DNA of 64,000 nucleotides from Syncephalis fuscata S228 (Eukaryota; Fungi; Zoopagomycota): NCBI GenBank assembly GCA_025786725.1, contig JAHLTZ010000025.1, forward strand, positions 1 through 64,000, read 5' to 3'. The notes below the pieces were generated by a model. That model did no database searches. It was not told the origin of the DNA and worked only from the letters and a program-made list of their open reading frames with translations. Positions 45,062-62,605 of this stretch are shown here, piece by piece (within the stretch, counting starts at the first letter, position 1; every line of letters begins with the position of its first letter). The translations under genes and the position numbers were made by a program.

Positions 45062-45474
45062 AACAATAATAATGATAATGAATTTTAACAAAAATCATAT
45101 TTAATACTTGTAATTAATTGTAACACCTTTATTAATAGATTGATTTAGATAAAAGAATGTTACATACTATCTGATTTCATTGAAACATTTGAGGTTGATT
45201 ATTGTTGTTGTTGGCCATGTGTAGAAAGATTGTTCGAATATTAATAGAAGCCATATGGTTGCAATTCCATATCATTTCACAGTCGTTGTTATACTAATAT
45301 ATCTATGCTATGTACCATTACATTTATAACAAATTTGACATTTATTGGTTGAGTTAAATAAACCGTATCATCATATAAAATATTGTATTTCATTTAATAT
45401 TATTATACAATATAATTGAAGCTATTACCCATTTAGTATGATTTGATGTTAAATGACTAGATTTAATAATATTT

Positions 45475-45778
45475 GGATTTGGATTTATTAGCTTAAGTGA
45501 GACAACGGTCCGTAGGACCTAACCGCGCATTTGCAGCATTTGTCTGCCACCCCTAGGAGAATAGACGGTTCATTTCGAACCTATCCGCGCGCAACGCAGA
45601 ACCTGCCATCTACAACTGAAAACCGTTGGTGGCTCTCCTCACGTGTTGGAATATCGACCATTTCTTCTACGGAAGGATCCCATCACGCATTTCCTGAAAA
45701 CAAGATTCGAACTAGGCGAACCAACATTTCCTACTTTAGGGAAGACGCGTTGACCGTTTAGGCCACCACGCCTCCCCC
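45475..45778 (-). mobile_element. tRNA-derived SINE, 304 bp, with up to 20-bp target-site duplication
   Basis: GACTAGATTTAATAATATTT is duplicated at 45455-45474 and 45779-45798, with a single-copy empty site in the other arm (~62162-62181). The minus-strand head has an A box TGGCCTAAACGG and B box GTTCGAATC. 3' hairpin GGTCC-TAC-GGACC and (AAATCC)n tail. Confidence 0.88.
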
Positions 45779-46344
45779 GACTAGATTTAATAATATTTAT
45801 TTTATTGAATATGGCGATGGATGGTGAGTGCCATTAAATATCCAATTATACTGATTTGAGTACTTACAAAAACAACACATGGATTAACATTATTATTACT
45901 ATTATTTATCTATTTGTTATATTTTAATAATGTTAAATATTATTTAGCATTTATTAATACTAATATCGAATATTGAAAATAGTACAGACTGATTTATTCA
46001 AACTAATTCAAATGTAGCTGACATAGCACTGTTTCAACAAATAACAGTTCTTAGTGTTGAAAACTGATTGGCGGTTTTATTACTATTATTTTGCTAAGAT
46101 GAAATTACAAGTTCATTATTATAAGCCTGCACAATCGAATAGGAGCAACCAATTGTAAACTTGTTAATAAAATAATGATTTTATTGATTAAAGTGCATAA
46201 ACCGGAGCATTGGCCAATATCTGGTATGTAAGTCGACTGAACGGCGTAGTTGCTAGATGCTTTTGCTTTTGACGAATATATATCTAAAGTGATCGGGATA
46301 GCGGTTTGGTTGCACTACCAATGCTAATGTCTTGAGATAATTGA

Positions 46345-46542
46345 TTATCCACAATAGTCGCGACATTCCTTATAACGACATTTGTCGTAGTCAAGCCTCC
46401 ACCAACGAGTGCAGTCTTTAATGCAAGCTTTGCAATCCGCAGGCTTAATTAAAGACTCTTTTGGTTTAGCATCCACCATGGTGGTTGTAGTGGCTATCAA
46501 AGCCACAACGACGGTGCAAACGACGGCAATAGAAAGCTTCAT
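46345..46542 (-). CDS. Small secreted 6-cysteine peptide, paralog 1 (C-x2-C-x3-C-x10-C-x4-C-x3-C)
   Basis: Signal peptide MKLSIAVVCTVVVALIATTTTMVDA. Mature KPKESLIKPADCKACIKDCTRWWRLDYDKCRYKECRDYCG. Paralog at 61397. Confidence 0.9.
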   Translation of the reverse strand: MKLSIAVVCTVVVALIATTTTMVDAKPKESLIKPADCKACIKDCTRWWRLDYDKCRYKECRDYCG

Positions 46543-48172
46543 AGTGATATTAATTTGTTAAAACAAACAAATAAACCAGACAATAGATTGTGTGGTATAA
46601 AATGTATAGTAGTGTGTGTTTGGCAAGAAGTAGAGTGATGCTGATATCGCAGTTGGTTGTGTATATTTTGTGGGCTATTTAAACTTATGGTTTACTGAGA
46701 TGCTAGTATACTGTAGTATATGAGGTACACTATTGATGTGTAATATGAGCCAATAGAGCAATCCAAATAATGGTTTAAGGTACACATGTCCAGTAGATTC
46801 AGGGTGTGATAGTGTGCTTCCTAGGCTTAATTTCAACTTGCTCGGTCTTGATTTAACCTGTCCGGTCTTGATTTTAACTTGTCTGGTCTTTACTTTAATC
46901 TACCAGTCATGTACACAAATAACACAACAACGTTCATAATCCAGTACATATGTGATAAAAATAGTCATACTAGCCTGTATTTTTTGTTATACGATTTAGC
47001 TATTTGGTAAAAGCAGGTATATTGTTTGGCTTTGTAAAGCGATAATGATGTTTTGCTGCCATTTCCACTGATCTGGTCCTCAATATCTGCATACATACAA
47101 AAATAGCACACAATACTGATACAAAACAAGTTTAATATATCAAACTGGTATTTTATACAGGTTTTACAGCCATACATGGGTCAGCCATGATTTTTAAATT
47201 ATAAATGTGTTGATTGGTACATGTATGCATTTCATTCGACACTATACCCATTTTATGGGGCAATAGTTGTTTCGAATTCACAAATGCATCGCATCCAGAC
47301 ATATCATGCCACATGTGCAACTACGATCATTCAAACGACAATTAATCTAAGTTATCTGAAGCTGCCTATACAATAAGTACTGTTTGTAGGATGATGCACC
47401 ATGAAATTCTGAGCAATGAAACATTCCAACAAGTTATTTTTATCAGTTTTTCAGCTGTAGACTAATTGCATTGGTTAAATTATACGCAATGCGATATGTG
47501 GACACTAAACTAGACGCTGTAGAAAGTCCTACCCAAATATCAGCAATTTCAAGTGCATAGTAGCTGTGGATTGTATATCAATTGGCAATCATCCAAGGCC
47601 TAAGTACTGCTTACATTTCTGAAACCAACTCTGACAACAAGTTAAGCAAGATGGAGTGTAGAAGAACAAGCCGAAGCAGAACCAATAGAAAAACAATTAG
47701 AAGCTTGAAGGTTTACTGGTTTAACCTATAGCAAACCATTGTAATTATGCTAAGCTGGACTGCGTTTATCAAAAAGTCGACTGTTGCTGATGCAACCAGA
47801 ACAGCAGCAACGTCAAATTGAGATAGCGCACAGAAAACAAAGAGTCATAAATAAAATTGAATCAATGAGTTTAGTTTGTAAATAGTTTATTATTGTCACT
47901 ATAATTTATAATCCTGGTTGTTTGTATAAATAAACATTTACAATCACGTTGTAGCTTCTTATATACTCACATGTACACGACCACCAACTAAGCCAACTAT
48001 TATAAGGCTTAATCTAATTATCTATCAGAGTAAGCAGCCAACATTATACATTATTGCAATAATAGAAAACAGATTAATTCTATTTATTGCCCATTAACAA
48101 AAGCTGTATAGCTATATTAAAATAAAACAAAACATTGGATTAAGCGAGTAATATTTATATGATCAAGCCATT

Positions 48173-48394
48173 TTTACTTTGACTCCCACATTTTGAGTTC
48201 TTAAAGTAAAATTCATTTCAATTAAAGTCGCACTATTATGCGCAACACAATTATATTGCTTCCTATTAAGTGTTGTTAATAGATTGATTTGAATAAAAAA
48301 AATGTAACATACTATCTGATTTCATTGAAACATTTGAGGCCGATTATTGTTATTGTTGGCCATGTGTAAAAAGATTGTTCGAATATTAATAAAA
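48173..48394 (-). mobile_element. Fanzor-derived repeat copy (5'-truncated) at inner end of left arm
   Basis: Reverse complement of 59552-59770. Encodes INIRTIFLHMANNNNNRPQMFQ* plus the tail. Confidence 0.75.
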
Positions 48395-48475
48395 GTGAAA
48401 CAGATGAAATAAAAAATGTAAAACAAACAATAGCTTCTATGGCTTAATTATTTTTGGTACCTTTATTGACTAATT

Positions 48476-49775
48476 ATGGCGACTAACAAGCTACAGAAAA
48501 CACAGCTACAACAATTATTGCGTCGATTAGTGCAATCGCCAGGAACATTCACTGCTGAACATGCGTATACAGCACTGACCGACATACTAAGTGGTAATGC
48601 AACACCAAGTCAAACGGCAGGTTTTCTTACGAGCTTGCGTGCCCATCAGCTCGACCATAAAGCGGATATTATAGCAGCGTGTGGCAAAGTACTGATTGAA
48701 CAAGCGGGAAAAGTGCCACTTGCTGACTACGCTTTATCGGCCAACGATATTGTCGATATTGTTGGTACGGGTGGTGATGGTCACGACACGTTTAACGTAT
48801 CTACTTCAGCGGGTATTGTTGCCGCGGCTGCCGGTGCTTGCGTGGCCAAGGTAAAAATAGCAACGTAGCGAACATACATTTGATGAACGGTAATAGCTAA
48901 TTTTAACTAATTTGGCTTTGTTTATGTGTGTGTGTGTGCGTGTGTGTATCACTAGCATGGTAATCGTGCCTCATCGTCGGCTTCTGGTTCGGCCGATTTA
49001 CTAGAAGCGTTAGGTTGTCAGATTAGTAAATTGACACCTGAACTTGCTGCTCGTCTTTTGGCAGAAAATAACTACTGTTTTTTATTTGCGCAAACTTACC
49101 ATCCAGCCATGGCGCATGTGGCATCAGTGCGTAAGGAACTCGCCTTTCCTACAGTATTTAATCTGCTAGGACCGCTTATTAATCCGGCTCAGCCTAAACG
49201 AATAGTTGTAGGTGTAGCCGCTGCATCTTTAGGACCTACTATGCTTGAAGCATTGCGTATCGGTGGTGCAGAACGAGCATTGGTTGTCTGTGGTGAAGAA
49301 GAATTAGACGAGGTAAGTAAATACGTTTATTATAATACGGCTAATTAATTTACTGCTATTATTAATGTATGTAGATTAGTACAGCTGGATATACGAATGT
49401 AAGTATTTATAATCATATTTATTAACTGTGGTATTAATCAATTGGCTAATTAATTTTCATTATTAGGTGTGGCAATTACTAGATGGAAATGTAACGCATT
49501 TTAAACTTCATCCTAATGATTTTGGATTATCAGTCCATCCACTGGATAAAATACGCGGTGGTGATTCACATCATAATGCTGCCATATTACGTGAAATATT
49601 GGCGGGTCAGCGAAAAGATGCCATCTTGGATTTTATTCTATTAAATGCCGCAGCACTACTGGTCGTTGCTGGTAAAGCCGCCGATTGGAAGGCTGGTGTA
49701 GCATTGGCTCAAGACGCGATTGAGTCAGGACGGGCCACACAAGTATTGGCACGGTTTGCAGCGGCTACGTCATAG
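48476..49775 (+). CDS. TRP4: Anthranilate phosphoribosyltransferase, multi-exon
   Basis: DIVGTGGDGHDTFNVSTSA, AK/HGNRASSSASGSADLLEALG, FLFAQTYHPAM, TVFNLLGPLINP, LDE. Confidence 0.97.
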
Positions 49776-49995
49776 TTTTATTTTATAAAAAGCAATATGT
49801 TTGGTTAAAGTGGTCGAAATAAATAAATTAGTGCAGCTACTACGATGTAGTAATAATACAGCATAGAATAGGCTATGCAATGTTTATTAAAATTGTCGCT
49901 ATATTAAAGAAATCAAAACTAATAATAAGCGCTAAAAATGAAATAAAAATAGAGTTAGATAATTAATTGGTATCGTGCTAATATTGCTATTCTTG

Positions 49996-52543
49996 CTATT
50001 CTTGCTGTTCATAGCTAGCCGATCGTTTACTCGATGCTGCTTTTGATCCTGTCTCGTTTACAGATTCCGATTCGATTACTTGAATTTCATCAGTAGCGGT
50101 AGTTTCAAAAGAGCGTTGTGTATTTAGCGGACGAATAAATGATAAAGCACTCAGATATTTTGTTTTACGGCTCGTTACACTATCACGTAGTCGTTGCCGT
50201 AAATTACCTGATGATGTCTGCTCTCCAGGTGTTGCTTCGTAGGCTGGTGGCGGTGCTTCCACAGTAGACACTGTAGCCATAGTAACTAACGAACGAGGAC
50301 TATCTGGATAACGAGACGGTGATAGCAAGTTCGATGCGGCTCGTTCACGCTCCTTTAATCGAACAGCCATATCCACGGCATTATCAAGTTCTTCTTCGTT
50401 AAGACAGGACAGATTTGTATCAGTGACGGAGTAATACGCATTATGGGTGCCCAGATCCGTCCAAAGTGATATGTCAGAGTCACGATTCGCCTTTCTGCCC
50501 AGTGCAAAGTTAGAGGCAAAGGTTGGTCGATGTGTACGCTGTCCTTCACTGCTTCCAGAATTACTAAGACCGGATTTATTGCTACCTGTCGTATTTTTAG
50601 CATTAAAACGTTGTGTGCGCTTAGCAGATGGAGTTGATCGTTTATTGGCGGCAATAGTCATGGCGGCAGCTTCAGCCTTTCGCTGCTGTCGAACTGCTTC
50701 ACCACGCAGCAATTGTTGTACAATAAGTGTCGATGCCACAACATCTAATAAAGTAATTAGTATTAGTTATACAACATTAAATGCATATATTCATTACTTA
50801 CAGTCAACGCTGTAAAGCGCATTTGTGATATACGGTGGCATAGCTTGACTGACATAGAGTAGTGGGCAGAATACACTTGAGGCACAGGCACATACCAAAT
50901 AAATAAGACCATCTCGAGCTAGAGCATCGTAGACACGCGCAGCATTGCTGGCCATTGTGCATCGATGTCGCATCACCACGGCCAAGAAGAGGCCAGAGCA
51001 TACAAGGTTACTTAATACATCTATGACAATCTTGCTGTAAAATGTCTCGATACTAATACCAAATAGCATATATGGTGCGAGACAGCCATCATTCGGTAGA
51101 TGCTTTACATCAAGCGCATATACCCGTACCGCATTATAAGTCAATAGTGCAACAACGACGATTTCCACGCCAATGCCTACAACGGCCACCCAGTAGGCAC
51201 GCTTATGGCCATAATAGGCTTTAACCATAAGAATACCCGCCACAGCTCCGGTGCCCAAATAGCCGGTAATAAGTCCAATAGCGCGAATAACCTTACATGG
51301 CACAATTTGATCTTCACTATCGCCATCACCCACAAGTAATTGCGGTATCAACGGTAAATGGGCCATTAATACACCCGCGGTCAGCATGACTAATAGCCAA
51401 CGCGCAGGATTTCCACGATCGCGATTCAATAAGATCGACGAATTAATTGCATTACTTAGCGCAAAATAAAGCACAATACTAAGAATGCCACGACTTATCA
51501 TACGGCCGACAAAGCGATCACGTTCGCTTGCTATATACCAGCGTTCATTGGTGGCCGAGAAAGAGAAGAAATCTGGCTCTGGTTCAAGTTGTGTATCAAC
51601 CGGCGCTAGATTGGTACAAGCATGGACAACTTGCGGCTCATTCTGGCGGTGAAGTGCTAATGAGAAATTAACAAAGGCACGCGCTCCTTGCCGTGTCTCC
51701 AGACGTGGATGCAAACTGAGTGTCAGCTTGGGCAAAGTAAGATTGGCAATAGGTGGTTGTAGTGTAGCATTCAAAGAGGCTAATTTGTAAATAACACGAC
51801 AGCAATCAGTTAGCATATAGCCAAAAATAGCTAGTTTATATCGACTTACCTGATAGATCACCCAGCATACAGGAGCCAAAATGGCCAGGGAAGCATTTGT
51901 ACCGTGTAGACGACTCCGATGAGGACACAACAGGTGGACGTGAAACAGTCCGCCATGTATTAACAATATTCTCTCTATCTGGTACAAAATCCGTGGCTTT
52001 AAACGGCTTGCCATCATCGGGCATGCCATCCCAAGCATTCAACGAGGCCAGACTAACGATAGGTGCCTCGCCTGTACCCGCCGGAATAACTTGTTGTGGC
52101 TGATTAGGATAACGAAAGTCTGGATCGTAGACTCGATTAATGTGTTGGCAGTAACCAACTGAAGTGGTGTTGCTGGTACCGGCTACACCCGCCGACAAGT
52201 CAATGCTGTCAGAAAGTGCATTTTCGTGCAACTTTATCAAATACACTGCCCGATCATTAGGATCAATTCGCCGGCTACTGATGTACACTCGACCATAAGG
52301 CAAGCTGCCACCTGAATAAAAGGTAACTGTCACATCCATGGTAGGCGTACGTAGACGACCGCGGATTGCATCTAATGGCTCTAGACCGCTTCGCAACGGT
52401 ATTGCCACTCTAACACCCGAAGTCGAAAAGTCTGCATTGACACATTGAACATCAATATGCAATACAATGAATAATATTATACTAAGGAAATAAAGCATGT
52501 TGACTTTTACACCATGAATGGGCATTCTATCTTGAATGTCCAT
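49996..52543 (-). CDS. Seven-transmembrane GPCR-like receptor with signal peptide, large extracellular N-domain and long cytoplasmic tail (2 introns)
   Basis: Leader MLYFLSIILFIVLHIDVQCVNA. Seven hydrophobic segments in 50730-51500. Cys at the top of TM3 (PCKVIR) and in ECL2 (DGCLAP). Ser/Thr-rich tail with PPPAY. Start ATG uncertain (52543/52525/52498). Confidence 0.8.
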
Positions 52544-53204
52544 TACGGCCAATCAACTAAATCTAATGGAGTTGGATGTATATTAAGGTGGAACAATAAT
52601 AACAATAGTTATTTAACAAGCTAATAGACTATTTAACTCATTAATAGACCATAGATCATGTCCTTTGTCTGCACGTCTACACTATTATTACTACGATTAA
52701 TAAACTACACAATAACACTAGCAGTAACGCGATTAATGTACTATGCAAATAATAGGCACGAATAAATGGTGTTTGTATGAATTAATAGGACAAAATAAAA
52801 CGAATGGATGCCAGAACAAGGTGTGGCGGGCAATAAGATAGCATGTATTGTTTCGGTGTTTCATGAATAACTGAGCGGTGAAAAGAGAACTGGATTGTTA
52901 TCTGCATGCGTCTCTCAATGGGTGCCATAGTGTAACCTCATTGTAGAAAGACAGCGCGGTCCGCATGGCAATGAACACGCGCATGCTAATAACAATGGCT
53001 GTGCTGTTGTTACAGCCCACCAATGACTATGGCGAATTGCATTTTAATTGGTAATACCGCGTGAATGCTTGGTTTCCCTGTCGCCTTTGGCTTTTTATCC
53101 ACACAGTGTACGTCATATTAGAGCCAATCTAGGCCAGAAAGAGGTGGGAGTAGATTTGATGTGGAATGGCAGCTACCATATCGATCCTGTATACTTTTTG
53201 CCCT

Positions 53205-53934
53205 TTATGATGTCGATGTATGTCCTTTTGGAAAGGGCCGCACGGTCGAGGAGGCTAGAACAGCTTTGCGTTGTATCGTTATATGAATGGCCGAGTTGTG
53301 GCGTTCTTGTGCCTCTGGCATGCATTCCTAAATAAGACGAATAGTGTGTTAGTGCTTTTTATTGGTCTGGCTATTATTATTATTGGCCGTTGACTAAATC
53401 AATGTCACCTTGGCAGTTGTTGTGCCGAGTAAGAAATGCATTGGCGCCTACCTGATCTTTTGGATAAATATCATCGACTAGAGTGACAGTTGATGTAGTT
53501 GTTTGAAGGGATACTTGATGATGCATACTTGTTTCAATAGCCGTGGCCAGCTCAATGGCCCGGCCAATAGCTGCACCAAGTCCGTGAATAACAATAGTGT
53601 CGAATCTATTGTCAAAGTGTTTATAATAAATATTAGAGTGCTATAGAATTATAATTATACATACTTTGCCTCGTTTGAAGCTAAAAGCTTTTTCGCACGT
53701 GCTAATTGGCCGTGGAATGAGCTTTTTCGCGTAACATAAATGTCGTTTGGTTTAGTTGCTGCTCTTTGTGGTGCTCGCTTGGCGATCCGACCTTGAATTC
53801 CATTATTAGAACTGTTGTCGTGTCGCAGCTCACCATACTGTTAATGACTTACCTTGTATTGCGCGCTGTTGACGGGCAACTTGGCTAGTCCCCACGATCT
53901 TAAACGGAGTATTACTAGAGGATTGGGTACTCAT
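53205..53934 (-). CDS. POP7: RNase P/MRP subunit Rpp20/Pop7 (Alba fold), multi-exon
   Basis: KRAPQR..PNDIYVTRKSSF, IVIHGLGAAIGRAIELA, TSTVTLVDDI, RHNSAIHITI. Not in the ORF track because of introns. Confidence 0.88.
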
Positions 53935-54399
53935 TGTATAAAGTGCGTTACAAACAATACTGCGTAAAAAGTAAAAGTATAAAAAAATGGCGCTTCTTAT
54001 CTTCAAAAAGCAAAGGCAATAATTTTAAAGAGTTTTCATAATTTTATGGATCTATTTTTCTTTACTGTTTATTATTTGTCATTCTTATTACACTCGTTGT
54101 GTTTTCTATGAATATACTTGTCCTTATTGTTTGCTATCTATTCTTCTTATTACACTCATTGTTTTATTGATAAGATGTTTTATAATTATATTTGCTTTTA
54201 TACTATTAATTTTTATTCTTTCTTCTATTCCACCACTTGAACAATCCCCTCATCCACATTTCAATTTGCTCATAGCCTTTATATGTATAATGCCATTCAA
54301 TTTATGACTTGTATTATCATATTATATATATCATCTCATTTATTAATTAAATAAAAATAACCATTGTTTTTTGTATGTCAAACAATTTATTAGGCATTT

Positions 54400-54800
54400 A
54401 ATGTGGTTTGTGTCAAATGACTAAATTTAATAACATTCGCCTAGTTGAACTACATTTTCCTTCTATTGAACATGGGGACAAGTGGTGAGTTTTATTTAAT
54501 TGTCACATCATCACACTTATTGCTTTTTTGGGGACAAATGACTAATATTTAATGACGCCCAATCTATTGAACATGATGATGGGTGGTGAGTGACATCAGT
54601 CATCAAACACTCACCATTGTAGCTTTATTATCCAATATGCATATATCCACCGTTTACCTATATCATTCCCATTCTATCTCACATTACTATATATCATTAT
54701 ATGATATACTAGTCATATTCTATTGTTTATCTACACCAACACACTTTACTCATTCCACTCATTGCATTATATGCTTTCCACCGCACATTTATAATTTCAT
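54400..54800 (-). repeat. Dispersed repeat family B copies (partly tandem)
   Basis: AAATGACTAA..TTTAAT..ATTGAACATG..GGTGAG occurs twice (54415-54490, 54537-54600) and matches 33945-34000 and 45780-45835. Confidence 0.6.
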
Positions 54801-55309
54801 TTATCGTTCCATACTCGTATAGTCTTCCTCTATTCAATGTTTTTTGTTTTTGTTCTAGCTTTATTATTAACAAATGTCGACTAATGTCGGTCATCTGTTT
54901 AATTACTTTAACATTGCTAATCTCGTTCAATATTGTGTATTCATTATAATGTTTATCATTTTATTGTATATTGCCTATACGCTGTCTATAGTCGTTGTCG
55001 GTATGATTCCAGTTCTTTTATGAATAAAAGTTAACATATCGCACTTAGTTTGTTCACTGAGGTATATTGGCTGAATAAATAATATGAATATGAACGAAGT
55101 TATGTTTTATTAAAAATATTTATAAATAAACTAGATTATGTCAATTAGTTATGATTTTAGTGTTAATCAAGCAAAGTGACGGGTCTACATAGTAATAACA
55201 CATATTGTGATGATATATGCGTACTGGATAATGAATCTATGATGATGCAGTTTATTTAACTCAATTAACAAGTACTAAAAGTTAAAAGCTAAAAATGAAA
55301 TGATACATA

Positions 55310-55464
55310 GCATGTATATATTAACGCCACAATAACGACTGCGGAATGATATGGAATCGATCATATGACTTTTATTAATATTCAATCAATCTTCCTACAC
55401 ATGGTCAACAATGATCGGTCTTGTTTCAAAAAAAATCAAATGATATGTTACACTATTTATTTAA
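55310..55464 (+). mobile_element. Fanzor-derived repeat copy, 3'-truncated
   Basis: NNDCGMIWNR-DHMTFINIQSIFLHMVNNDR. Keeps the GAT Asp codon next to a 2-nt deletion. Confidence 0.7.
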
Positions 55465-55479
55465 AAGGCTACGGTTGCG

Positions 55480-55855
55480 TTTACTTTGCTCCCACATCTG
55501 TCCCCAAAGCGCAATTTGTTTCAACTGAGGTTATGCTGTTGTTATACGCAACATAATTATATTACTTCCTATTAAAATACTGTTAATAGATTGATTTAGA
55601 TAAAAGAATGTAACATACTATTTGATTTCATTGAAACGTTTTAGGCCGATTATTATTGTTGTTGGTCATGTGTAGAAAGATTGATCGAATATTAATAGAA
55701 GCCATATGGTTGCGATTCCATGCCATTCTGCATTTGTTGTTATTGTATCTACGTGCAATGTAAATTATTGCACCTAAATGGTCTTTTCTATTTTCCAATA
55801 TTCCACTATTGCATTTTGGGCATATTTGTGCTGTAAGATCAGGATTAATATAATT
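55480..55855 (-). mobile_element. Best-preserved Fanzor/TnpB-derived repeat copy: 73-codon open nuclease C-terminus (55849-55628) plus conserved tail
   Basis: INPDLTAQICPKCNSGILENRKDHLGAIIYIARRYNNNKCRMAWNRNHMASINIRSIFLHMTNNNNNRPKTFQ* matches the TS-x-x-C-x2-C...C..WNRD..AA.NI...RP..F pattern of TnpB/Fanzor (Zn ribbon plus RuvC-III). Confidence 0.82.
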
Positions 55856-56644
55856 AATTCCTTAATTATTTTAATAAAATTTAATGATTAACACAAGCTT
55901 AAAAAACAATACATTTACTAATAAACATCACAACTATAACATAGCTTAATAATATAGACATTTTAATAAACTAATGTTTATTAATAAACAATTTACTTTT
56001 GCAGTGTCATCTAAATCTAGCAATTTATTGCTATTATTGTGTATAACGCGCGATAAGTGTCCAACTACTTAGCTACTAGACCACAAGTTAGTAGCAAGCA
56101 ACCGATAATACAATATCAATTATTTCTTTCATATCATCTGCCCGCCCGTCGGCCTCTATCCTGTTTGCTAAACTAAAAGCGTAACATTTCTATAACAAAA
56201 TGGCTATCACATGGCCACTAGATTATAACTCTGCCACACCTAACGACAGTACAATTATTACCGCCGCATATGTCTTTTAGGTTACACCAAGAACATGTTC
56301 TGCAAAATTAACACTAATAATGCTGAAACTGCAGTTGGCGTTAAAACAAACGTTTTTTTATTAAGAAGCAAATACAAACTACCAATGAAACAGCTATTAC
56401 AAAGAAAAAATATGTAATTAACAATGTTCAGTTTGCAATGAACATTATTACAAGAAAATAAAGTGCAGTATAGGCAAATAATGAGTTAATCAATAAATAA
56501 TTTTTAAATTTAAAAAACATTAAAAACGGTGGATTTTTAAAAAAATATATTATGGTGAAAGATTTATAAGTTTAAAACAATGTATTTTAGTAAATTCACC
56601 TTTATTAATCAACCAATTAAATCATGGCAAACAATAACATCTTA

Positions 56645-59076
<2,432 letters not shown>

Positions 59077-59439
59077 ACTCAACTTTGTTTAAACAGCAAT
59101 TACAACAGTAAAAACGACAGTAACAAAAGACCAATAAGTAGAAATAATAGCCGTAGCGGTTGGGGGAAGAAGAAGAATGGGTAGTGCACCATAGGCCAAC
59201 CGTTTACTTACTTTTAGATATACGTCACCACGATGTATTGAACAAATGTGAGGTAGACTCAGCTAAATCAAAAACCATAGTTTTAATTCGGGTTGTCAGT
59301 CATTTCAGATAATATGGTTTTGACACTGAATCACATGAGTCTACTAATAAATCAATTAACATTAGGAAGCTATTATGCTTTTAACTTTCACATTTTTATT
59401 TATCCATTTCACCCTTCAACACTTTTGAATACAATTAAA

Positions 59440-59770
59440 CATTTATTATCACAAATATGCCCAAAATGCAATAGTAGAATATTAGAAACTAGAAGAGACC
59501 ATTCAGATGCAACAACAGATGTAGAATGGCCTAGAATTGCAATCATATGGTTTTTATTAATATTCAAACAATCTTTTTACACATGGCCAACAACAATAAT
59601 AATCGACCTCAAATGTTTCAATGAAATCAGATAGTATGTTACATTTTTTTATTCAAATCAATCTATTAACAACACTTAATAGGAAGCAATATAATTGTGT
59701 TGCGCATAATAGTGCGACTTAATTGAAATGAATTTTACTTTAAGAACTCAAAATGTGGGAGTCAAAGTAA
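59440..59770 (+). mobile_element. Fanzor-derived repeat copy at inner end of right arm
   Basis: SQICPKCNSRILETRRDHSDA..(deletion)..NCNHMVFINIQTIFLHMANNNNNRPQMFQ* and a tail ending GGGAGTCAAAGTA. Confidence 0.78.
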
Positions 59771-62503
59771 AAATGGCTTGATCATATAAATATTACTCGC
59801 TTAATCCAATGTTTTGTTTTATTTTAATATAGCTATACAGCTTTTGTTAATGGGCAATAAATAGAATTAATCTGTTTTCTATTATTGCAATAATGTATAA
59901 TGTTGGCTGCTTACTCTGATAGATAATTAGATTAAGCCTTATAATAGTTGGCTTAGTTGGTGGTCGTGTACATGTGAGTATATAAGAAGCTACAACGTGA
60001 TTGTAAATGTTTATTTATACAAACAACCAGGATTATAAATTATAGTGACAATAATAAACTATTTACAAACTAAACTCATTGATTCAATTTTATTTATGAC
60101 TCTTTGTTTTCTGTGCGCTATCTCAATTTGACGTTGCTGCTGTTCTGGTTGCATCAGCAACAGTCGACTTTTGATAAACGCAGTCCAGCTTAGCATAATT
60201 ACAATGGTTTGCTATAGGTTAAACCAGTAAACCTTCAAGCTTCTAATTGTTTTCTATTGGTTCTGCTTCGGCTTGTTCTTCTACACTCCATCTTGCTTAA
60301 CTTGTTGTCAGAGTTGGTTTCAGAAATGTAAGCAGTACTTAGGCCTTGGATGATTGCCAATTGATATACAATCCACAGCTACTATGCACTTGAAATTGCT
60401 GATATTTGGGTAGGACTTTCTACAGCGTCTAGTTTAGTGTCCACATATCGCATTGCGTATAATTTAACCAATGCAATTAGTCTACAGCTGAAAAACTGAT
60501 AAAAATAACTTGTTGGAATGTTTCATTGCTCAGAATTTCATGGTGCATCATCCTACAAACAGTACTTATTGTATAGGCAGCTTCAGATAACTTAGATTAA
60601 CGTCGTTTGAATGATCGTAGTTGCACATGTGGCATGATATGTCTGGATGCGATGCATTTGTGAATTCGAAACAACTATTGCCCCAAAAATGGGTATAGTG
60701 TCGAATGAAATGCATACATGTACCAATCAACACATTTATAATTTAAAAATCATGGCTGACCCATGTATGGCTGTAAAACCTGTATAAAATACCAGTTTGA
60801 TATATTAAACTTGTTTTGTATCAGTATTGTTGCTATTTTTGTATGTATGCAGATATTGAGGACCAGATCAGTGGAAATGGCAGCAAAACATCATTATCGC
60901 TTTACAAAGCCAAACAATATACCTGCTTTTACCAAATAGCTAAATCGTATAACAAAAAATACAGGCTAGTATGACTATTTTTATCACATATGTACTGGAT
61001 TATGAACGTTGTTATGTTATTTGTGTACATGACTGGTAGATTAAAGTAAAAGACCAGACAAGTTAAAATCAAGACCGGACAGGTTAAATCAAGACGAACA
61101 AGTTGAAATTAAGCCTAGGAAGCACACTATCACACCCTGAATCTACTGGACATGTGTACCTTAAACCATTATTTGGATTGCTCTATTGGCTCATATTACA
61201 CATCAATAGTGTACCTCATATACTACAGTATACTAGCATCTCAGTAAACCATAAGTTTAAATAGCCCACAAAATATACACGACCAACTGCGATATCATCA
61301 TCACTCTACTTCTTGCCAAACACACACTACTATACATTTTATATCACACACTCTATTGCCTGCTCTATTTGTTTGTTTTAACAAATTAATATCACTATGA
61401 AGCTTTCTATTGCCGTCGTTTGCACCGTCGTTGTGGCTTTGATAGCCACTACAACCACCATGGTGGATGCTAAACCAACCGCGGAACATGGTGCTCCAGC
61501 TCTAGCTCATTATAGTCCTGCGGATTGCAGGTCTTGCGTTGATATATGCGCTCGTTGGCGGTGGGACAAACGCAGCAAATGTCGTAAAGTGGAATGTAGC
61601 GAATGGTGTGAAAAATAAATGATTTCAAGACATTAGCATTGGTAGTGCAACCAAACCGCTATCCCGATCACTTTAGATATATATTCGTCAAAAGCAAAAG
61701 CATCTAGCAACTACGCCGTTCAGTCGACTTACATACCAGATATTGGCCAATGCTCCGGTTTATGCACTTTAATCAATAAAATTATTATTTTATTAACAAG
61801 TTTACAATTGGTTGCTCCTATTCGATTGTGCAGGCTTATAATAATGAACTTGTAATTCCATTTTAACAAAATAATAGTAATAAAACTGCCAATTAGTTTT
61901 CAACACTAAGAACTGTTGTTTGTTGAAACAGTGCTATGTCAGCTACATTTGAATTAGTTTGAATGAATCAGTCTGTACTATTTTCAATATTCGATATTAG
62001 TATTAATAAATGCTAAACAGTATTTAACATTATTAAAATATAACAAATAGATAAATAATAGTAATAATAATGTTAATCCATGTGTTGTTTTTGTAAGTAC
62101 TCAAATCAGTATAATTGGATATTTAATGGCACTCACCATCCATCGCCATATTCAATAAAATAAATATTATTAAATCTAGTCATTTAACATCAAATCATAC
62201 TAAATGGGTAATAGCTTCAATTATATTGTATAATAATGTTAAATGACATACAATATTTTATATGATGATACGGTTTATTTAACTCAACCAATAAATGTCA
62301 AATTGTTATAAATGTAATGGTACATAGCATGGATATATTAGTATAACAACGACTGTGAAATGATATGGAATTGCAACCATATGGCTTCTATTAATATTCG
62401 AACAATCTTTCTACACATGGCCAACAACAACAATAATCAACCTCAAATGTTTCAATGAAATCAGATAGTATGTTACATTCTTTTATCTAAATCAATCTAT
62501 TAA
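59552..62503 (+). repeat. Right arm of inverted segmental duplication (partner 45132-48394)
   Basis: See left arm. Lacks the SINE. The flanking repeats continue beyond both junctions on this side. Confidence 0.95.
61397..61618 (+). CDS. Small secreted 6-cysteine peptide, paralog 2 (C-x2-C-x3-C-x10-C-x4-C-x3-C)
   Basis: First 82 nt identical to paralog 1. Mature KPTAEHGAPALAHYSPADCRSCVDICARWRWDKRSKCRKVECSEWCEK. Confidence 0.9.
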   Translation: MKLSIAVVCTVVVALIATTTTMVDAKPTAEHGAPALAHYSPADCRSCVDICARWRWDKRSKCRKVECSEWCEK

Positions 62504-62605
62504 CAATATTTTAATAGGAAGCAATATAATTATGTTGTACATAGCAGCATGCCTTCAATTGGAACGAATTTTACTTTGAGGGCTTAAAATTGGGATCAAA
62601 ATGTA
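62120..62605 (+). mobile_element. Fanzor-derived repeat copy preceded by family-B sequence, at outer end of right arm (mirror copy 45132-45840)
   Basis: YNNDCEMIWNCNHMASINIRTIFLHMANNNNNQPQMFQ* and a tail ending TTTTACTTTG..GGGATCAAAATGTA. Confidence 0.75.

Follow-up and report, generated by a model that had tools for sequence, protein, structure and literature searches.

The window analysed here, a stretch of 64,000 nucleotides (nt) from Syncephalis fuscata S228 (GCA_025786725.1, contig JAHLTZ010000025.1, positions 1 to 64,000, forward strand), contains two small genes, A and B, that encode secreted-type peptides with six cysteines and lie in two nearly identical copies of the same DNA. The locus raises the question of how the cargo, the Cys-rich part behind the signal peptide and pro-segment, came to differ so strongly between genes whose flanks hardly differ. 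The answer preferred here, with a probability of roughly 0.6, is that the split between the two cargoes is the older event, surviving as an island of divergence within flanks that gene conversion and crossing-over have made alike among neighbouring units.

Twin peptide genes in an inverted repeat

Each gene sits in one arm of an inverted repeat, the unit of which consists of about 1.9 kb of upstream DNA, the gene and about 1 kb of downstream DNA. The arms are separated by an 11-kb spacer, from which both genes point away. The elements at issue are as follows, where ORF denotes an open reading frame and UTR an untranslated region.

46345-46542, minus strand: gene A, an intronless ORF for a precursor of 65 amino acids (aa).
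61397-61618, plus strand: gene B, an intronless ORF for a 73-aa precursor.
45129-48397, minus strand: arm A of the inverted repeat of about 3 kb.
59511-62549, plus strand: arm B of the same repeat.
46336-46460, minus strand: divergent block of arm A, its core identical to a third copy, C, at C168:91930-92128.
61479-61624, plus strand: divergent block of arm B, comprising pro-segment, cargo, stop codon and the first 6 nt of the 3' UTR, with a 21-nt indel relative to A.

Reading of both strands found the two ORFs intact where the original prediction had placed them, and both encode precursors of the secreted type, as it had proposed. Neither is present in the protein collection searched, so both genes are unannotated. 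The precursor of A opens with a signal peptide of 25 aa; a short pro-segment lacking a dibasic site follows, and then a six-Cys cargo with the spacing C-x2-C-x3-C-x11-C-x4-C-x3-C. Gene B has the same signal peptide and the same Cys spacing, with a stop displaced by one codon relative to A and a long pro-segment that is a degenerate copy of the PALVRR motif of the wider gene family. At the family's VRR position A reads SLIK and B reads ALAHY, the motif being degenerate rather than absent. The reading frame of B and all its six Cys remain intact through 30 substitutions (p 4e-4 under random change), so B has been under constraint as a peptide.

Divergence is confined to the cargo block

The two genes were compared in a six-sequence alignment of repeat units. 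The first 82 nt of the coding sequence (CDS) are identical, as originally described, and the first difference falls at B 61479 and A 46460. From the inner arm edge to CDS nt 82, covering the 5' flank and the signal, 13 of 1898 bases differ (99.3% identity), and two segments of the 3' flank differ at 10 of 535 and 3 of 259 bases (98.1% and 98.8% identity), in agreement with the earlier estimate of about 98-99%. Within the block of B (146 nt), 44 of 127 aligned bases differ, leaving 83/127 or 65% identity together with 21 gap columns, and the contrast between block and flanks is overwhelming (Fisher p 9e-45).

The codon-level description of the original prediction was reproduced exactly. The stretch from PADC to the residue past the last Cys shows 30 differences in 96 nt; of its 32 alignable codons, 18 are different, each with a change of residue, and the other 14 are identical, all six Cys codons among them. 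The 7-codon indel and the shifted stop are both real. The block does run past the stop, but for 6 nt in B (to 61624) and 9 nt in A (to 46336) instead of the approximately 12 nt first given, and the sharp return of identity holds, with the next difference lying 159 nt beyond the block end at 61783. The differences thus reach non-coding bases past the stop (B 61619-61624), which selection on the peptide alone would not yield.

Flanks and cargo follow opposite histories

The third unit, C (C168:91930-92128), lies 45 kb off and carries an A-type cargo in more diverged flanks; the cargo cores of A and C show 0 differences in about 120 nt. All three units, each of about 3 kb, fall within 50 kb. Contig C22 is a colinear second copy of the A-B region and contig C169 a colinear second copy of C. 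C22 lacks a 323-nt insertion present in arm A, carries substitutions in A and is full of 1-nt indels on its B side; it behaves as a second haplotype. Copies on the window contig are denoted A_w and B_w, and those on C22 A_c22 and B_c22. Two local features are needed for the comparison.

45475-45797: 323-nt insertion, only in arm A of the window contig.
61281-61365, plus strand: patch in the 5' UTR in which B equals C, and A, in both haplotype copies, differs at 5 sites.

The insertion is young and polymorphic, being absent from arm B, copy C and C22, and the 5' UTR patch is a second, separate recombination patch.

Informative sites change their allegiance along the unit. Far upstream, 36 of 42 place A with B against C; in the 5' UTR, 5 of 9 place B with C against A; and in the block, 39 of 46 place A with C against B. 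When both haplotypes are counted, all 13 flank sites distinguishing B from C show the B state in A_w, and all 38 block sites show the C state in A (flank against block, Fisher p 2e-12). These opposite patterns indicate that recombination has uncoupled the cargo from its flanks.

The direction of that recombination is visible in the haplotypes. Across 1.7 kb upstream, the two arms on one contig differ at 3 sites and the two haplotype copies of arm A at 21, and at 5 sites with the B state in A_w, A_c22 has retained the C-like one; arms that are closer than alleles, together with these 5 sites, are the signature of arm-to-arm conversion. In the 3' flank (45215-45797 and 61627-62420, compared with C22 and L021-L023) the likeness is crossed, A_w being nearest to B_c22 and A_c22 nearest to B_w, with 3 mismatches against 10-13, and there are 6 sites of 'abba' type and zero arm-specific sites. 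Reciprocal exchange between inverted arms would give such a crossed likeness. The spacer has the same orientation in the window contig and in C22, and the crossed flank fits two successive crossovers between the arms, a flip followed by a flop.

The cargo itself points to age. The long pro-segment of B aligns with those of family members L007, L009 and L020, and B also has the CVD motif of L020. In A and C alike, the long pro-form with its degenerate PAL-VRR motif is gone, as is the CVD motif, and the two share derived bases of their own just beyond the stop. B therefore keeps ancestral features lost in A and C and is not a mutated A. In the flanks paralogs are more alike than alleles, and the trees of flanks and island are opposite, as in a divergence island under concerted evolution.

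In the proposed sequence of events, A/C-type and B-type cargoes would be separate lineages that split well before their flanks became alike. Gene conversion and crossing-over among nearby units, chiefly between the inverted arms A and B, would then have homogenised all but the cargo block; the mismatch density of the block would halt conversion tracts at its edges, and selection would favour the retention of two different peptides. The near-identity of the flanks would be secondary, arising from recombination, so the flanks are not a clock. Three observations, namely arms closer than alleles, crossed 3' flanks and the family features kept by B, argue that the flanks were made alike and against a recent change of the B cargo.

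Several points weigh against this reading. None of the 15 residue-identical codons of the block differs synonymously, so the greater age of the block is argued indirectly. Short-read polishing of the repeat could have made A_w and B_w look more alike than they are, and C22 is of poor quality with many 1-nt indels, so that haplotype comparisons need care. Selection keeping two cargoes is putative. Finally, in the expression data, which are assembled contigs of four sequencing runs placed on arm B (one of the runs being RNA-like), the B block is essentially uncovered in all four; in the RNA-like run its bin mean is 11 against 10^5 on the family-wide signal region.

If the arms were truly more diverged and consensus polishing of the repeat had homogenised the flanks, the island would be an artefact of assembly. 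The assembly does hold redundant, indel-rich contigs (C22, C169, C176), and the evidence comes from contigs and not from raw reads. Against this, features private to one arm persist (the insertion of 323 nt in A, the 10 differences of the 3' flank and the 5' UTR patch), C22 independently reproduces both arms, the spacer and the B block, and no comparison of arms exceeds 1.8% divergence, compared with 35% for the block. An independent DNA run, moreover, contains a contig that joins the C22-type A cargo to the 3' flank, which supports the C22-type A allele. An artefact is accordingly judged extremely improbable.

A gene family built on a shared module

Genes A and B are exact matches of a 41-nt CDS start found in 63 genome copies at no more than 3 mismatches (control 0), and a looser DNA search of the genome returned 241 candidate family loci; the family numbers at least 63 and possibly over 240 copies. 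The genome-wide search for paralogs with leader and flanks, suggested alongside the original prediction, recovered 63 copies by leader and 59 loci by flank alignment, and the conserved leader with a variable Cys-rich cargo, noted at first for the twins, is the rule across a family of at least 63 copies. Contigs C22, C169 and C176 match parts of larger contigs colinearly, with 97-99% identity; single-base indels abound in some of these redundant contigs, and others have real substitutions and variants of the presence/absence kind. These redundant contigs indicate that the assembly holds unmerged second haplotypes, so that family copy counts are inflated.

All of the 57 distinct copies sampled start with the same signal peptide of about 25 residues, followed by a pro-segment usually ending in VRR. 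In about half, the reading frame then runs on uninterrupted through a cargo of 25-45 residues, which in most cases has six Cys; the common cargo opening in these intronless members is C-x2-C-[IVM]-x2-C. The remaining half or so have a splice donor followed by arrays of 3-nt exons, which were decoded crudely, for reading. A and B depart from the array members in having their cargo in a single ORF not spelled by 3-nt exons, and from the usual pro-segment in lacking the dibasic VRR end.

The family homology is partitioned sharply along the gene. Alignments to arm B extend in 59 loci as far as CDS nt 81-84 and pick up again just past the stop for about 250 nt; exactly over the cargo the homology falls from 59 loci to 1. 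Two modules are thereby delimited.

59900-61478, plus strand: family 5' module, with an upstream region without a long ORF, the 5' UTR and the first 81-84 nt of the CDS.
61625-61870, plus strand: family 3' module, its consensus beginning at the stop codon, with a near-invariant box of about 35 nt.

Some 1.3-1.6 kb of upstream DNA is about 80% identical among dispersed paralogs, and no ORF longer than about 60 aa occurs in the upstream module (59900-61300; 46640-48000). The conserved upstream stretch exceeds the length of a simple promoter. An 894-nt contig of the RNA-like run spans 60080-60968 at a depth of 75. A variable, usually six-Cys cargo is framed in this family by a fixed module for expression and secretion, made up of the upstream stretch of about 1.5 kb, the 5' UTR, the near-invariant signal/pro leader and the 3' box that opens with the stop codon. 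S. fuscata, a parasite of other moulds, keeps diverse secreted peptides behind this one shared promoter-and-leader module.

A search of 1.8 billion representative proteins returned hypothetical proteins of S. fuscata as the sole relatives, and on these comparisons the family is restricted to S. fuscata and mostly unannotated. Two annotated S. fuscata proteins (P0008 and P0013) and locus L048 combine the same leader with a long Cys-less cargo containing several KR/RR sites, so the leader module serves more than one kind of secreted product. The nearest relative of the B leader and N-terminal cargo is L020 (G000:C306:635347-635499, minus strand), which has an in-frame TAG past the third Cys; the frame beyond it holds three further Cys before the usual family stop, and L020 is probably a recently broken member. 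On crude decoding, the one-codon-exon genes L049 (start G000:C14:3511-3551) and L065 (start C339:52446-52486) specify equal peptides, save that one of the two has a further block of 8 residues, which gain or loss of a micro-exon run would produce.

A second locus with the same mosaic

The pattern recurs in the tandem pair L011/L012, 2.8 kb apart on contig C268. The flanks of the pair show 1 difference in 1.4 kb upstream and almost none over 1 kb downstream, and the cargo shows 21 substitutions and an 18-nt indel, with three differences just beyond the stop. The distant paralog L018, whose flanks are 19% diverged from those of L011, nevertheless carries the L011 state against L012 at 21 cargo sites, while more than 220 flank sites unite L011 with L012 against L018. 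Among the 24 intronless copies (about 12 distinct loci), flanks of at least 97% identity around differing cargoes occur in 2 groups only, and both consist of physically neighbouring copies. In the ordinary dispersed pair L011/L018, cargo pS (the proportion of synonymous differences) is 0.14 against a flank divergence of 19%, with an omega (dN/dS) of 0.72. The repetition of the pattern at this locus counts further against a polishing artefact, and the two twin loci offer natural experiments on the limits of gene-conversion tracts and on cargo selection.

Search for a donor of the cargo

The sharp module borders also bear on cassette replacement, the proposal that A and B are very recent duplicates in one of which the cargo was overwritten by ectopic gene conversion, the template being a different member of the family, or cDNA from one of its one-codon-exon genes, and the leader and 3' box serving as homology arms. 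The block edges do coincide with the family-wide module borders, and the identical cargo cores of A and C make a transfer from C to A, or from A to C, possible. Such a transfer nonetheless leaves unaccounted for a 31% divergence between the cargoes of B and C in flanks about 2% diverged.

The original prediction had proposed paralogs elsewhere as the source of a swapped mature region; a donor for the B cargo was found neither as contiguous DNA nor as protein nor in one-codon-exon form. Genome searches with the B block found no second copy of it, either in contiguous DNA or in protein, and the 11-mers that it has in common with 50 other loci are at chance level. The strings W-R-W and D-K-R-S of the B core have no three-exon phase-1 micro-exon match genome-wide, in a search whose control recovers a known array. 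For the L012 cargo likewise no donor was found, its only other copy lying on a redundant contig. The lack of a donor weakens cassette replacement, including its proposed template, and it is considered unlikely. Swaps of single-codon exons were also rejected, since they would cluster in array phase 1, and it is phase 0 that clusters best (18, 20 and 19 triplets struck in phases 0, 1 and 2).

A broader form of the idea is decidedly doubtful; in it, leader and 3' box would be more than expression signals and would provide the handles for recombination in a system that regularly exchanges cargo, either ectopically or by way of one-codon-exon cDNA. If true, such a system would shuffle peptides among strongly expressed slots and form a eukaryotic analogue of the cassette switching of pilins and variant surface glycoproteins (VSG).

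Possible selection on the cargo

In neutral simulation that keeps the Cys residues, zero synonymous-only codons between A and B has a p of about 0.004, and the differences cluster by codon (18 triplets struck, p 0.016). The Nei-Gojobori method gives pS 0.15-0.17 and pN (its nonsynonymous counterpart) 0.35-0.39, on about 17-22 synonymous sites. The all-nonsynonymous pattern is weaker evidence than it looks, because 10 of the 18 differing codons carry 2-3 changes and synonymous sites are few.

Across paralogs, dN/dS gave a mixed result. Omega is above 1 for A/B (about 2.8, on about 22 synonymous sites), for A/C (1.3) and for L026/L035a (1.8), but lies at 0.23-0.85 in four other pairs, with 17-26 synonymous sites in each; over seven pairs other than A/B the range is 0.23-1.8. 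Diversifying selection on the loops is suggested and seems likely, and its strength is certainly not of the magnitude naively implied by the flank identity.

Divergence in place after a recent duplication, through extreme positive selection or a locally targeted mutator, would draw on these codon patterns, namely the 18 residue-changing codons, the zero synonymous-only codons and the clustering by codon. With flanks only 0.2-1.8% diverged and dN at about 0.47, it would need an omega far above any reported value. It also fails to provide for the differences in the UTR, the spectrum of change is unremarkable (16 transitions, 14 transversions), and a recent history from A to B cannot give a B that retains ancestral states whose loss A and C share. 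Intense positive selection in place, one of the mechanisms originally suggested, is not supported in that form, given the opposite trees of cargo and flank and the ancestral features of B, and divergence in place is regarded as very unlikely. Adenine-specific mutagenesis of the diversity-generating retroelement type was rejected on the same spectrum, all bases being changed. Since the flanks are no clock, identical flanks around a different core are not to be taken as recent hypermutation, and an old split preserved in homogenised flanks is the reading carried forward here.

Expression evidence

In the RNA-like run, depth over the signal region reaches about 190,000-340,000 against about 75 just upstream, far above what 241 DNA copies could give. 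The coverage picture on arm B is swamped by this family-wide signal region. A signal form with four threonines occurs only in A, B and C among the 57 sampled copies, and contigs with this form are covered to a depth of about 6,100, so that one or more of the three genes is probably well expressed. The very high depth in the RNA-like run, together with the lack of relatives outside the species and the mostly unannotated status of the members, makes the family a good candidate for molecules that act on the host mould.

Predicted structure and comparison with known systems

AlphaFold predicts a helix-loop-helix for the Cys-rich part of A (pLDDT, the predicted local distance difference test, 73 with five sequences), and B alone reaches a pLDDT of 63. 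The helical-hairpin-like shape suggested at the outset is in keeping with this predicted helix-loop-helix of the six-Cys part. No Pfam family matched above threshold, with sub-threshold noise only (e.g. Vanabin-2, E 0.017), Foldseek found no fold match in the PDB, and a literature search found no description of such a fungal peptide family; the family remains undescribed, as anticipated, in respect of Pfam families, solved folds and papers. Two sets of structural candidates were rejected: the matches of VIA-align are generic helical hairpins only, with Z at most 4.4 and not above background, and the best match in the ESM Atlas, eclosion hormone at 0.77, is below any useful level. The peptides are most likely disulfide-locked helical hairpins secreted at the interface between parasite and host.

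Disulfide-stabilised helical hairpins include the plant alpha-hairpinins, the scorpion Cs-alpha/alpha toxins such as kappa-hefutoxin and the framework-XIV conotoxins. Hairpins of these groups have two CX3C motifs and 4 Cys, the motifs lying on antiparallel helices in the alpha-hairpinin and Cs-alpha/alpha type. The S. fuscata peptide, as modelled, resembles them in being small, basic and two-helical, with Cys on the facing sides of the helices, but A and B have C-x2-C-x3-C ... C-x4-C-x3-C with 6 Cys in place of two CX3C motifs.

The conotoxin gene superfamilies of cone snails combine a conserved signal/pro region with a hypervariable mature peptide in a three-exon animal layout. These superfamilies, and likewise MgCRP-I of the mussel Mytilus (PMC4558851), resemble the S. 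fuscata family in a signal/pro region conserved even in nucleotides, a hypervariable mature peptide on a fixed six-Cys framework, numerous paralogs and very high expression. The S. fuscata family differs in being fungal and without sequence relationship to them, in having its precursor in one exon or, in sister genes, in arrays of one-codon exons, and in the additional sharing of an upstream stretch of about 1.5 kb and of a 3' box; excess amino-acid change is weakly shown in it.

A peak of divergence between duplicates under gene conversion is described, for example, for exon 5 of the human red and green opsins (PMC3924837). The likeness extends to close duplicates whose flanks are kept near-identical by conversion, paralogs more alike than alleles or orthologs, and strong divergence limited to a short block where the duplicates differ in function. 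In S. fuscata, by contrast, the island is the whole mature peptide with 35% divergence and an indel instead of a few sites, the arms are inverted, and the pattern recurs in a second pair of the family. A divergence island under conversion is thus a known evolutionary pattern, of which S. fuscata supplies two instances in a new family.

Fungi are known to have secreted peptide precursors processed by Kex2 (KEPs; PMC6339444). The point of likeness is the dibasic VRR with which most leaders of the S. fuscata family end before the cargo; each S. fuscata precursor differs in holding one cargo without repeats, and A and B have lost the dibasic site.

Other features of the window

The spacer contains ORFs of 414, 247 and 238 aa on the minus strand within 49996-52552, which have no Pfam match. 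A dispersed repeat bounds both arms, with one copy within the spacer.

62300-62549, plus strand: dispersed high-copy repeat of 200-250 nt, with at least 608 candidate copies in the genome.
45129-45335, 48277-48437, 55537-55743 and 59511-59677: other copies of the dispersed repeat.

This repeat may have mediated duplication of the 3-kb unit.

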